From positions 186,001 to 250,000 of IMG/VR virus record IMGVR_UViG_3300028920_000001: a stretch of 64,000 nucleotides of DNA. One strand, given 5' to 3'. Numbering within the stretch: position 1 is the stretch's first letter; each line of letters begins with the position of its first letter. Of this stretch, positions 1,265 to 29,437 are shown one piece after another. The notes under the pieces were generated by a model that ran no database searches, was not told where the DNA came from, and saw only the letters and a program-made list of their open reading frames with translations. A program made the position numbers and the translations under genes.

Positions 1265-2374
1265 TCAATCATCCTTCATGGCTTTGCGTATCTTCATGTA
1301 CACATCCATGAAAGGCTGGTTCTTGGTGAGTTGGAAGTCCGCGATGACCTTCATGTTGAGAGTGGACTTGACCGCTCCGATGCACACCTCACCAGACAGT
1401 TCCTTCAGCCACTTGAAGACGTTCTCGGTGGTCTGATGAACCTGCTTCTTGTGATCCACCTTCTTGTCCTTGGGAGGATTCCGGGTGGCTTCCATGACCG
1501 CATTCACGCCAGCAATGGCGCAGACGAACAGACGGTCGAGAGTCATATCCTTGGGAGGATGCGTGCCCTTCAGGACCAGCGCATCGATCGCCGGCTGGAT
1601 ATGCCGGTAATGCTCGAGCCACACCTTGAACTTGGTTGCAGCACCGGTTCCGACGCGGCCGGCAACCAACAGTTCCTGGAACTCGATGGGATCGTTTGGC
1701 GAAGTGCCGTCCAGGTCACGGGCAGCCAGAGTCCAAGCACGTGGGCTCGGGTGGCAGTATGCCGTTTCGTCACCCTCTGGTGGCTTCTGCAGCAGGAAGT
1801 TGGTATTCCGTGAGAGGAATCCAACGATGAGAGGATTGACACCAGCAGGCACTGCCCAATCTTGCCATGCCTGGAAATCGTGGGTGACTCGGTAGACACC
1901 GCACCGATTCGTCAGGGCATGAGAGACCGTCTGCGAGTAGGCACCCTCGTCCGGCAGGTTGCCTGTCGCGAGGACTGCCTTGAACTTGAGCTTAGTCCCG
2001 TTGATGCTGCGAAACTGGAACAGCTCCAGCATCGGGTTCTGAAGCTCAGGCTTGGCCTTGTCGATCTCGTCCACGAGAAGGACGGTCTCCTTGGCTTCAG
2101 CTTCACTCACGAGCGGGAACCCCTCTGGAAGGGCGTAGATGCTCTTGTTGGTCTGCTCATTCACGGTAGGCAGACCCAGCAGGTCCGGTGCCTCTAGAAC
2201 GGACAGGTTCAGGTACTTGTGACCGAGACCCGTCTCCTCACAAGCCTGCATGGCGATCTCGGTCTTGCCAATACCGGCCGGACCGAACGTCATCAGATTG
2301 CTACCACGATGGATCGTGAAGATCATCAGGTGCTTGAGTGTCGCTTGGTTAATTTCGCTGACTTGGGTTAGCAT
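1265..2374 (-). CDS. MoxR-like/AAA_5 AAA+ ATPase
   Basis: Walker A GPAGIGKT, DLLGLP, Walker B LLVDEID, ATGN sensor, ALTNR arginine finger; AGGAGG SD before ATG 2374. Confidence 0.85.
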   Translation of the reverse strand: MLTQVSEINQATLKHLMIFTIHRGSNLMTFGPAGIGKTEIAMQACEETGLGHKYLNLSVLEAPDLLGLPTVNEQTNKSIYALPEGFPLVSEAEAKETVLLVDEIDKAKPELQNPMLELFQFRSINGTKLKFKAVLATGNLPDEGAYSQTVSHALTNRCGVYRVTHDFQAWQDWAVPAGVNPLIVGFLSRNTNFLLQKPPEGDETAYCHPSPRAWTLAARDLDGTSPNDPIEFQELLVAGRVGTGAATKFKVWLEHYRHIQPAIDALVLKGTHPPKDMTLDRLFVCAIAGVNAVMEATRNPPKDKKVDHKKQVHQTTENVFKWLKELSGEVCIGAVKSTLNMKVIADFQLTKNQPFMDVYMKIRKAMKDD

Positions 2375-8716: not shown

Positions 8717-9064
8717 GGCCCAGTGGCGGAATGGCATACGCAGGGGATTTCAACGGAATCCCATCAACAGAAATGTTGATCCAAAAAAACCCTGGAAATT
8801 GCTGGAAACCCCTTAGAGCCTGATACACCACAACATGACTGGAAACGGTAAGTGTGACGGTTTGAAAAGAATCAGGATTGGGCAATCAGCAGCCGAGCCC
8901 CTTGACTGGGGAAGGTTCAGAGACTCGCGCTCAGGGCACCTGACCAGATAATGCTGAAGGTGAAGATACAGTCCAGACCACAACGGAAACGGCTCGCGAA
9001 ATCGAGAGTGGTACGAAAATCCCTCGCCCTAACGGGATTGTGAGTTCGAATCTCACCTGGGCTA
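8717..9064 (+). tRNA. trnL: tRNA-Leu(UAA) interrupted by a group I intron
   Basis: acceptor GGCCCAG/CTGGGCT-A; exons 8717-8750 and 9016-9064 join to GGGGA-TTTAAAA-TCCCT; long variable arm; GTTCGAATC T-loop. Confidence 0.9.
8751..9015 (+). ncRNA. group I self-splicing intron (265 nt, no ORF)
   Basis: P AATTGCTGGAAA, Q AATCAGCAG, R GTTCAGAGACT, S AAGATACAGTCC; P1 GGGATTT/GAATCCC with U.G at the splice site; terminal G at 9015. Confidence 0.9.
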
Positions 9065-9171
9065 CTATGGTGATAGGCTATGACAATATCATTCTGTGTG
9101 ATAATGCCATTCAGACGGCACAAAGATCTGAACGGAGGCAGTTTCCGGTCTGGCAGATAAAACCGGATTTC

Positions 9172-9244
9172 GGGAGTATAGCTCAGTCGGCAGAGCCACC
9201 GGCTTTTAACCGGTAGGTCCAGAGTTCGAGTCTCTGTGCTCCCA
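9172..9244 (+). tRNA. trnK: tRNA-Lys(UUU)
   Basis: GGGAGTA/TGCTCCC acceptor; ACCGG-CTTTTAA-CCGGT anticodon arm; GTTCGAG T-loop. Confidence 0.92.
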
Positions 9245-9438
9245 CAAAATGAAATCTGACGCTCAAAAAATGAAAGCTATCCGATTCTTGCTTACAAACG
9301 GTAGTCGCGGAAGCGAATGGCAAGAAGCAGGACTGCTTTGTGCAATCGAAAAAGTCGTCAACGAAGATTATAAAAATCTTTCCACAAGAACCTTACAAAG
9401 CCTCCTAGAGGAGGCTAAAAAATATTAATGCAGCTACC

Positions 9439-10210: not shown

Positions 10211-10473
10211 TCAACTTCGATAAATATGTAAGACTAGTCGATCGTTCAAACGTCTGTGAAGCTTGTCTTGCTCGAAATCCTCAAAATTCACCTACGTCTT
10301 GGGTTTATCGAGAATTTCTAGCTAAAGAACGATCAAACAAATTGGTCTGTCATGTTATCGGCCTTTGCAATCATCATCTCAATGATCAGGATGCGCTTTT
10401 AAAAGCTGGTTGGGAGTGGATTTCTAAAGAAGACTTGAAGCTATTCAGAATTGCCCTCCTTATGAAGTCATGA
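10207..10473 (+). CDS. IMES-tail protein, Cys-rich family
   Basis: CEAC...GLCNHH; ends FRIALLMKS. Confidence 0.7.
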   Translation: MINFDKYVRLVDRSNVCEACLARNPQNSPTSWVYREFLAKERSNKLVCHVIGLCNHHLNDQDALLKAGWEWISKEDLKLFRIALLMKS

Positions 10474-10730
10474 TCTCTATCATCGACAAATCGGACGTCT
10501 GCGTCATTTGCAAACAATATGGTGAGTCCTACGATCCACCAACCGCTTGGAGTATTAAGACTGAAGTCAATGGAATTTTTTCTTCTGGCACTTTTTTAGA
10601 AATTACTGTACTTGGATTTTGCAATGTCCACTCTGATGAATGGAGCGTGCAAGTTCGTAAGCCTCCATGGGAAGATTTACCTTCATGGAAATTAGCTCAA
10701 TTTCAAGCTTTTGTTGTAATGTTTCAGTAA
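10470..10730 (+). CDS. IMES-tail protein, Cys-rich family
   Basis: CVIC...GFCNVH; ends FQAFVVMFQ. Confidence 0.7.
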   Translation: MISIIDKSDVCVICKQYGESYDPPTAWSIKTEVNGIFSSGTFLEITVLGFCNVHSDEWSVQVRKPPWEDLPSWKLAQFQAFVVMFQ

Positions 10731-10790
10731 TGCTCTCCCCAACTGAAAAGAACAGCATACGTAAGGCCCTTTAGGGCCTATTCCTGTTTC

Positions 10791-10885
10791 GGGGGAGTAG
10801 CTTAGCCTGGTTCAAAGCACCGGCCCTATAACCCGGTTAGCGTCTGATAAGCGCGAGATCGTGGGTTCAAATCCCACCTCCCCTA
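10791..10885 (+). tRNA. trnI: atypical tRNA-Ile with two anticodon-like hairpins (UAU and GAU)
   Basis: acceptor GGGGGAG/CTCCCCT-A; T-arm GTGGG-TTCAAAT-CCCAC; hairpins ACCGG-CCCTATAAC-CCGGT and GCGT-CTGATAA-GCGC. Confidence 0.75.
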
Positions 10886-10931
10886 CCGAAGATCTCGGTG
10901 CCTGTGTCGTATCCGATTATGGAGGCGATCC

Positions 10932-11285
10932 ATGTCACACGAAGTTGATCCAGAGCAGATGCTCGAAAAGGTTGAAACCATAAGGGAGCAGACTACTGAA
11001 TTGATGACAAACCTGTGGCAGTTGAAAGCCAAGATCAAGCAACTGGCCTGGGTAGTTTCTACTCAGGACGAAGACTTATTCAGTCTCTTGCTCAAATTGG
11101 CTGATGTCAAAGATAATATGAGCAAGTATCACACTGAATTACCACCAGACCAGGCCAAGCTAGAACACACAAATCGAGATGCTGCCCATCAAAAATACTG
11201 GTCTGATTTGTGCAATGAAGACCGACGCTTGACTGATAAATTGGCTATAATTGGACGCCAGTTCCGAGAAGCCAAAGAGCCGTGA
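10932..11285 (+). CDS. hypothetical coiled-coil protein
   Basis: promoter motif and GGAGG at 10890-10925. Confidence 0.7.
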   Translation: MSHEVDPEQMLEKVETIREQTTELMTNLWQLKAKIKQLAWVVSTQDEDLFSLLLKLADVKDNMSKYHTELPPDQAKLEHTNRDAAHQKYWSDLCNEDRRLTDKLAIIGRQFREAKEP

Positions 11286-29282: not shown

Positions 29283-29363
29283 AGCCCGCTTATGTGCTCT
29301 AATAAGAAATTCTCGAGCTCCAGTTGACAACTGCTCGCGAGCTCGTCGAGTTGGAAAAAGTTG

Positions 29364-29437
29364 TGGGACCCGTCGGGTTCGAACCGACAACAGCCCGCTT
29401 ATGAGGCGGGGGCTCTGACCGATTGAGCTAGAGTCCC
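29364..29437 (-). tRNA. tRNA with CAU anticodon (elongator Met or Ile2)
   Basis: GGGACTC/GGGTCCC acceptor; CCCGC-CTCATAA-GCGGG; GGTTCGAACCC; paired 1:72, so not initiator. Confidence 0.88.

Follow-up and report, generated by a model that had tools for sequence, protein, structure and literature searches.

A 95-nt gene in the genome of a huge phage encodes a predicted tRNA-Ile that carries two anticodon-like arms: one is inferred to read the rare isoleucine codon AUA through the anticodon UAU, and a second, conserved arm presents GAU, the usual isoleucine anticodon. The second arm probably serves as a pseudo-anticodon, that is, as the handle by which the isoleucyl-tRNA synthetase (IleRS) of the host recognises the molecule. 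The gene belongs to a large family of tRNA-Ile(UAU) of 87–99 nt, found mostly in uncultivated phages but also on some bacterial chromosomes. In the literature searched, which was not complete, such a design was found only as an engineered idea, and no natural GAU or CCA pseudo-anticodon arm was found described.

The gene lies within a 64,000-nt window, comprising bases 186001–250000 of a 426,960-bp virus record (IMGVR_UViG_3300028920_000001) that has direct terminal repeats and 40% G+C. The best-matching sequencing run, probably its source, is a marine sediment metagenome. A sequence-only reading had claimed that two hairpins, both spelling isoleucine anticodons, lie between normal D and T arms, and this observation is confirmed at every coordinate (Table 1). 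ARAGORN calls a 97-nt tRNA-Ile(tat) with a long variable arm, while the Rfam tRNA model (RF00005) scores 53.3 bits, against a gathering score of 29, over exactly the gene's coordinates and treats the second hairpin as an insertion. The gene therefore has the features of a tRNA: a cloverleaf with a 7-bp acceptor stem, a D arm, an anticodon arm, a 5-bp T arm with a UUCRANY loop, and a discriminator base. It also has those expected of an AUA decoder, namely UAU in a 7-nt loop with A37, A38 and A73. Two details depart from the canonical form. In the 7-nt reading of loop 1, position 33 is C rather than the usual U, and the 31–39 pair is a C.C mismatch. Single-sequence minimum-free-energy folding does not return the cloverleaf and is barely better than shuffles (z = -1.67), which is common for tRNAs and is not informative.

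Table 1. Features of the two-armed tRNA locus, in window coordinates
Feature	Position	Strand	Sequence and description	Basis
Terminator-like hairpin	10764–10789	+	AGGCCC-UUUA-GGGCCU and T-rich tail; ends the upstream small-ORF unit just before the tRNA	Promoter and terminator scan; sequence
Two-armed tRNA-Ile(UAU) gene	10791–10885	+	Position 1 to discriminator A73 (10885); C74 and C75 follow at 10886–87; A76 not encoded	ARAGORN; Rfam RF00005; family covariance model
Acceptor stem, 5' strand	10791–10797	+	GGGGGAG; pairs with 10878–10884 (CUCCCCU), with G1.U72	Sequence; ARAGORN; helix covaries in the family
D arm	10800–10818	+	GCUU / 11-nt loop / AAGC; G15 can pair with C48 (10860)	ARAGORN; paired change in wetland relative
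Arm 1 (inferred decoding anticodon arm)	10820–10836	+	CCGGC / CCUAUAA / CCCGG, UAU at 10827–10829, C33 and C31.C39 mismatch; also read as ACCGG / CCCUAUAAC / CCGGU	Sequence; ARAGORN; covariation; paired change in wetland relative
Linker between arms	10837–10839	+	UUA	Sequence; family alignment
Arm 2 (inferred pseudo-anticodon arm)	10840–10854	+	GCGU / CUGAUAA / GCGC, GAU at 10846–10848	Covariation; paired changes in wetland relative; GAU-in-loop is the family hallmark
3' linker	10855–10860	+	GAGAUC; last five bases resemble a class I variable loop (AGGUC type) ending in C48	Sequence; family alignment; linker lengths in the family
T arm	10861–10877	+	GUGGG / UUCAAAU / CCCAC	Rfam; ARAGORN; covariation
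Hairpin after the discriminator	10886–10898	+	CCGA-AGAUC-UCGG, overlapping C74 and C75; possibly a 3'-processing or termination element	Sequence; hot-spring relatives' contigs align across 10859–10996 with about 10 differences

ARAGORN finds 37 tRNAs in the genome. Thirty-four lie on the minus strand between 80 and 140 kb, most of them in a dense run at 101–140 kb, and these include a normal tRNA-Ile(GAU). The two-armed gene lies apart from this array, near a second tRNA-Lys(UUU) and a tRNA gene interrupted by a group I intron. Its neighbours are small, early-type ORFs, and searches of ten of them against PHROGs and Pfam returned a single family of unknown function. The phage encodes no IleRS and no TilS of its own, yet it uses 1,599 AUA codons, 18% of its isoleucine codons.

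Relatives in other metagenomes indicate that the gene is under selection and is not decaying. The sequence-only reading had named unconserved pseudogene decay as the outcome that would count against it, and the relatives show the opposite. A wetland contig (X2) spans the whole gene with 14 substitutions and one deleted base, and the listed changes fall in pairs that keep base-pairing: U13-A22 becomes C-G in the D stem, C-G becomes G.U in arm 1, and G-C becomes A-U and U.G becomes C-G in arm 2. Loop 2 is untouched, while loop 1 changes from CCUAUAA to UUUAUAA. A salt-marsh contig (X6) has a different 5' part but the same two arms, with loop 1 reading CUUAUAA. The gene is nonetheless dispensable, since two hot-spring relatives (X3 and X4) lack 10503–10858, which holds the upstream ORF and the 5' two thirds of the tRNA, and the phage's closest PolA relatives (55–60% identity, 134–436 kb) lack the gene. 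A protein-based search for relatives with the downstream ORF found nothing in viral contigs.

A first DNA pattern (CTATAA...) was too narrow and gave only two chance hits. A pattern requiring TATAA, then CTGATAA, then a T loop recovered about 30 true two-armed tRNAs, some in viral contigs (several of them 150–380 kb long), some in metagenome contigs, and seven in MAG contigs. In an alignment of 18 members of this subfamily, all helices covary. Arm 1 is 95.5% paired, with four of five pairs compensatory, and arm 2 is 97.1% paired, with three of four compensatory. The overall covariation score is 0.72, against 0.19 for shuffles (0 of 500 reach it) and 0.09–0.20 for slid partners. Because part of the family was found with patterns that fixed loop 1 or loop 2, the invariance of those loops is partly by design. 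RNAalifold predicts both arms unaided. A covariance model built from the alignment scores the gene in the window 83.5 bits and other members 84–92 bits, with a more distant subtype at 63.9 bits, whereas ordinary tRNAs of the same genomes score 51 bits or less.

The interpretation offered by the sequence-only reading is only partly supported. It had proposed a short non-canonical intron, a dual-conformation tRNA covering all isoleucine codons, or a decoy for anticodon nucleases. The intron reading is not supported and is now highly improbable. Its arithmetic is right, as deleting 10821–10839 gives a 76-nt, canonical-looking tRNA-Ile(GAU), and the part 3' of arm 2 resembles tRNA-Ile genes of Streptomyces phages. 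However, the C27-G43 pair needed after splicing (10820–10855) is G.A in X2 and is kept in only 10 of 18 members (55.6%), about the level of the slid controls. It is arm 1 that holds the canonical position, directly after A26 and with a 5-bp stem, and it has a conserved anticodon-loop sequence and a covarying stem. In most family members, arm 2 has a 5-nt loop, or an A where U33 should be, so that removing arm 1 would leave no working anticodon arm. Bacterial tRNA introns are self-splicing group I introns in the anticodon loop, whereas this insert lies in the anticodon stem region. Nineteen nucleotides cannot be a group I intron. Rfam finds none at 10700–10980, although it finds one at 8739–8996, and no bulge-helix-bulge motif is seen at the junctions.

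Since the first productive pattern fixed loop 2, a second scan of viral contigs fixed only TAGC, the anticodon loop TTATAA, and the T loop, with a spacing long enough for an extra arm. It returned at least 120 loci. In 117 newly retrieved loci, ARAGORN called 59 distinct tRNA-Ile(tat) of 87–99 nt, whose extra-arm loops read CAGAUAA, UAGAUAA, UAGAUAG, CAGAUUA, UAGAUUG, CUGAUUA, CUGAUUU, UAGAUCA or AGAUG. GAU occurs in the variable region of 50 of 59, against 49 of 225 Leu/Ser/Tyr tRNAs from the same loci. In 47 of 59, GAU is centred in a 5- or 7-nt loop closed by at least three pairs, against 12 of 230 controls, where it is mostly off-centre. The family was gathered with sequence patterns and ARAGORN calls, and IMG/VR holds near-duplicates. 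Only distinct sequences were counted, but these are not phylogenetically independent. About a fifth of the family lacks GAU in the extra arm and has other loops, such as CUAACAA or GGAC. The discriminator is A73 in 45 of 46 resolvable members from this unbiased scan, and in 20 of 20 members found by pattern, a base that fits isoleucine. Arm 2 sits where a class II variable arm would, as a covarying stem-loop between the anticodon stem and position 48, but it is not a normal class II arm of the Leu, Ser or Tyr type. In the family, its loop is most often 7 nt rather than the 4 nt of Leu/Ser tRNAs, and its 3' linker is 5–6 nt rather than 2; in this gene the values are 7 and 6.

These loops bear on whether a single molecule might switch between two folds, so that either arm could act on the ribosome, reading AUA with one and AUU/AUC with the other. 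Such dual decoding is not favoured, and seems unlikely, but it is not excluded for this particular subtype. Here, loop 2 is a perfect anticodon loop (C32 U33 GAU A37 A38), the 3' linker looks like a class I variable loop, the arms flank one junction symmetrically, and arm 1 is the less canonical of the two. C33 recurs in three other family members and the C.C mismatch in at least two, whereas the two nearest relatives have U33. The roles could therefore be reversed or shared in this gene. Across the family, however, loop 2 usually has A at the place of U33 or is only 5 nt long (AGAUA, AGAUG, CAGAUAA, CAGAUUA), and such loops cannot make a normal anticodon loop; the CUGAUAA of this gene is the most anticodon-like subtype. 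In addition, arm 2 has a 4-bp stem, and a normal tRNA-Ile(GAU) is present in this genome and in 22 of 39 tRNA-rich loci that carry the family.

AUA means isoleucine in this phage. At 14 alignable AUA positions in its DNA polymerase A (PolA) and class II ribonucleotide reductase, homologues have I 42%, V 22%, L 4% and S 2.5%, and two of these positions are invariant or nearly invariant Ile. This profile resembles that of ATT/ATC positions (I 52%, V 21%, L 9%) and is unlike that of Leu positions (L 72%) or Ser positions (S 55%). It argues against the possibility that the long arm causes LeuRS or SerRS to charge the tRNA, with AUA then partly read as Leu or Ser, for recoding or to damage the host. 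Known tRNAs with a long variable arm and a UAU anticodon are charged with Leu (PMC3333845, PMC4300185) or thought to take Ser (PMC5389517), A73 also fits Leu, and the acceptor stem is identical to that of this phage's tRNA-Leu(UAA). Mischarging nevertheless appears very unlikely, given that the fold is 7/5 rather than 8/4 or 9/3, that the D arm differs from that of the phage's tRNA-Leu set, and that a GAU loop has no role in LeuRS or SerRS recognition.

The best explanation is that the locus is a working tRNA gene in which arm 1 would enter the ribosome and decode AUA without the lysidine modification made by TilS, while arm 2, not used for decoding, would give host IleRS the anticodon it recognises. 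A UAU anticodon is a poor handle for typical bacterial IleRS: the Escherichia coli enzyme prefers LAU over UAU 360-fold in kcat/Km (PMC3575796, Table 1). Both arms spring from the same junction under the D stem and are of similar length, so that the anticodon-binding domain might reach arm 2 directly, or arm 2 might swing into the anticodon-arm position during charging. What the analysis establishes is the architecture of the gene, the conservation and covariation of both arms, the family-wide GAU loop and A73, the meaning of AUA in this phage, and its lack of IleRS and TilS. That the tRNA is expressed, that IleRS charges it, that arm 2 is what the enzyme reads, and that arm 1 decodes in this particular member are all inferences; every sequencing run found to contain the sequence is a DNA run. 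This mechanism is held with only moderate confidence, somewhat more likely than not. In known IleRS-tRNA complexes, the anticodon-binding domain reaches the true anticodon. Short phage tRNA-Ile(UAU) without the arm also exist, so the arm is not obligatory, and Bacillus subtilis can reportedly live on a G34U tRNA-Ile after loss of TilS, indicating that UAU is not unusable by every IleRS. On the other hand, the principle works when engineered, as a GUG pseudo-anticodon placed in a variable arm enhanced histidylation (PMC7590224).

A second phage family provides an independent parallel. A 92-nt tRNA(UCA) was encountered whose extra arm has the loop GUCCAAA, and a pattern scan then found 110 viral loci in which ARAGORN called 61 long tRNA(UCA), 50 of them distinct. 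These phage tRNAs, of 93–100 nt, carry an extra arm with the loop (C/G)UCCAAA and have G73 in 26 of 27. In a scan that put no constraint on the extra arm, 55 of 87 distinct sequences display CCA centred in a closed loop, the commonest loops are GUCCAAA and CUCCAAA, and CCA ranks first of all 64 trinucleotides. CUCCAAA is the anticodon loop of tRNA-Trp, and TrpRS identity rests on G73 and the CCA anticodon. Thus, in two unrelated isotypes, a decoder whose anticodon departs from the identity set of the synthetase carries an extra arm with the canonical anticodon and the matching discriminator, a pattern that follows synthetase rules rather than decoding or nuclease rules. Pairing a stop-codon reader with a sense anticodon makes sense for identity, but not for dual decoding.

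The parallel also bears on the third proposal, that the extra arm binds some other partner, such as a modification enzyme, a phage protein, or an anticodon nuclease aimed at tRNA-Ile(GAU), and acts as a decoy or sponge. The conserved GAU loop shows that something reads it, phage tRNAs can counter anticodon nucleases, and the gene lies outside the main tRNA array. This reading is not excluded, but it is unlikely and does not account for the coupling of GAU to a UAU decoder and to A73. A decoy need not be welded to such a decoder, yet the coupling is family-wide, and the Trp-type family couples CCA with G73 in the same way. Chromosomal copies, moreover, sit in ordinary bacterial gene neighbourhoods.

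The nearest precedent is synthetic. Mukai (2020) made the tip of a variable arm resemble the anticodon arm recognised by a synthetase, with the real anticodon reading a different codon, and showed that this can enhance histidylation (PMC7590224). That system used allo-tRNA chassis (9/3), HisRS and GUG, and needed a synthetase fused to an extra anticodon-binding domain, whereas the present tRNA is natural, 7/5, and would have to work with an unmodified host IleRS. The phrase ‘pseudo-anticodon arm’ in that paper cites two mRNA examples, and term searches of its text found no natural or phage tRNA case. Anticodon-arm mimics in mRNA, such as the thrS operator bound by ThrRS (cited in PMC7590224), are likewise hairpins that copy a cognate anticodon loop and are read by the anticodon-binding domain, but they repress translation, while here the mimic is inside a tRNA and would promote its charging. 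Mycoplasma mobile tRNA-Ile2(UAU) also decodes AUA with an unmodified UAU anticodon and bypasses TilS (PMC3575796). In that case, recognition was solved on the enzyme side (IleRS Arg865) and the tRNA is an ordinary class I tRNA, whereas here the adaptation would be on the tRNA side. Nematode nev-tRNA-Ile(UAU) are long-armed tRNAs with a UAU anticodon, encoded by eukaryotic nuclear genes and charged with leucine in vitro (PMC3333845, PMC4300185). The allo-tRNAs of Acidobacteria and others are long-armed, non-canonical tRNAs from metagenomes in which UAU is among the commonest anticodons (PMC5389517), but they have 8/4 or 9/3 arrangements and serine identity, while this gene and most members of its family are 7/5, and the family has A73.

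Most synthetases, IleRS included, identify their tRNA by the anticodon, which ties what a tRNA reads to what it carries and is a main brake on codon reassignment. A natural tRNA with one anticodon for the ribosome and another for the synthetase would show how evolution loosens that tie without changing the enzyme. It would explain how phages supply AUA decoders and, in the parallel family, UGA readers that work with unmodified host enzymes, and it would give synthetic biology a ready-made scaffold for freeing the AUA codon or stop codons. A broader and more tentative possibility, slightly less likely than not, is that phages and some bacteria already use a second, non-decoding anticodon arm as a general route around the anticodon-identity constraint, both for a sense codon whose decoder is a poor IleRS substrate (AUA: UAU arm plus GAU arm) and for a stop codon (UGA: UCA arm plus CCA arm). 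Such genes also matter for annotation, as ARAGORN labels them tRNA-Ile with a long arm, tRNA-SeC or an undetermined isotype.

Other readings of the locus found less support. A loop-loop kiss between UAU of arm 1 and AUA inside GAUAA of arm 2 fits only this subtype and not the family. C33-U34-A35 could be read as a shifted CUA anticodon, that of an amber suppressor, but standard-code ORFs of 80 aa or more cover 87% of the genome, giving no reason to invoke recoding. When either arm was removed, the remaining tRNA body had no clear nearest isotype, the top neighbours being CAU tRNAs (Met or Ile2), with some Ile.

Members of the family occur on viral contigs from 4 kb to 433 kb, and one 433-kb record has a two-armed copy, a plain 76-nt tRNA-Ile(UAU) and a tRNA-Ile(GAU) together. 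Near and distant BLAST searches with the region and with three family members against 50,697 cultured-phage records gave only partial T-arm/acceptor matches or nothing, so that no cultured phage with the family was found this way. Some chromosomal copies are in Acidobacteria-type MAGs. Two MAG contigs of 150 and 170 kb, one labelled Blastocatellia and the other Actinomycetota, carry nearly identical copies in a shared neighbourhood (alpha-2-macroglobulin and a 158-aa ORF), and one of the two loci also shows a beta-lactamase, an MFS transporter and a DinB-family protein. All five bacterial genomes with a copy also have TilS.

The coordinates of additional features in the window, elsewhere in the phage genome, and in other loci are collected in the table below. 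A large phage family of 93-100-nt tRNA(UCA), labelled tRNA-SeC by ARAGORN, carries an extra arm with the loop (C/G)UCCAAA, which matches the tRNA-Trp anticodon loop, and has G73 as its discriminator. On sequence grounds alone, these look like UGA readers with a Trp pseudo-anticodon. In addition, phage tRNAs for Asn, Pro, Lys, Thr, Glu, Met, His, and Trp were found with long variable arms capped by small GNRA-like loops. These are class II-like versions of isotypes that are normally class I.

Positions of additional features in the window, elsewhere in the phage genome, and in other loci
Sequence	Coordinates	Strand	Feature
Viral loci	L400-L588		Long tRNA(UCA) family
Metagenome locus L177	7896-7987	-	Long tRNA(UCA) family
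Window	8717-9065	+	tRNA gene interrupted by a group I intron
Window	8739-8996		Group I intron match (Rfam RF00028)
Window	9172-9245	+	Second tRNA-Lys(UUU)
Window	29363-29437	-	tRNA(CAU), Met or Ile2
Window	10503-10858		Stretch replaced in two hot-spring metagenome relatives
Window	10470-10730		ORF held by the replaced stretch
Phage's own genome (G000:C1), outside the window	80541-80615	-	Class I tRNA(UCA)
Phage's own genome (G000:C1), outside the window	109783-113049	-	Five paralogous short tRNA-Leu genes
Phage's own genome (G000:C1; L514), outside the window	299465-302224		ORF with intein and endonuclease domains
MAG locus L258	764-862	-	Chromosomal two-armed tRNA-Ile(UAU)
MAG locus L259	5613-5712	-	Chromosomal two-armed tRNA-Ile(UAU)
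Phage locus L010	2259-2346		Example of a class II-like tRNA with a GNRA-like loop
Phage locus L019	10065-10155		Example of a class II-like tRNA with a GNRA-like loop
Phage locus L097	941-1031		Example of a class II-like tRNA with a GNRA-like loop
L537 (G004, a 362-kb PolA relative)	1501-1591	-	tRNA with anticodon UUA

Within the window, the group I intron scores 65 bits against its Rfam model, and ARAGORN in intron mode calls the interrupted gene as tRNA-Ser(cga) with a 263-nt intron in the anticodon loop. The hot-spring relatives carry this gene with small insertions. The second tRNA-Lys(UUU) and the tRNA(CAU) lie outside the main tRNA array, as the two-armed tRNA does. In two hot-spring metagenome relatives, 39 unrelated bases take the place of the stretch that holds an ORF and the 5' two thirds of the two-armed tRNA, while the T arm and 3' acceptor strand of the tRNA and the downstream gene remain.

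Elsewhere in the phage genome, the five tRNA-Leu genes (anticodons GAG, UAG, CAA, CAG, and UAA) are only 75-76 nt long and lack the long variable arm expected of bacterial tRNA-Leu. The 436-kb relative has similar short ones. Of the five, tRNA-Leu(UAA) shares its acceptor stem (GGGGGAG/CUCCCCU) with the two-armed tRNA. The genome also has a 75-nt class I tRNA with anticodon UCA, which would read UGA. With the standard code, ORFs of 80 aa or more cover 87% of the genome. A potential reader of a different stop codon, UAA, occurs in the 362-kb PolA relative, where a 91-nt tRNA with anticodon UUA has an ordinary 7-bp variable arm with a GAGA loop.

The chromosomal copies of the two-armed tRNA-Ile(UAU) in MAGs labelled Blastocatellia and Actinomycetota are nearly identical. 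Both lie between a 158-aa ORF and an alpha-2-macroglobulin gene, and both genomes also have TilS. Lastly, a 919-aa ORF in the phage's own genome has intein splicing and LAGLIDADG endonuclease domains, and several ribonucleotide reductase homologues in related phages also carry inteins.
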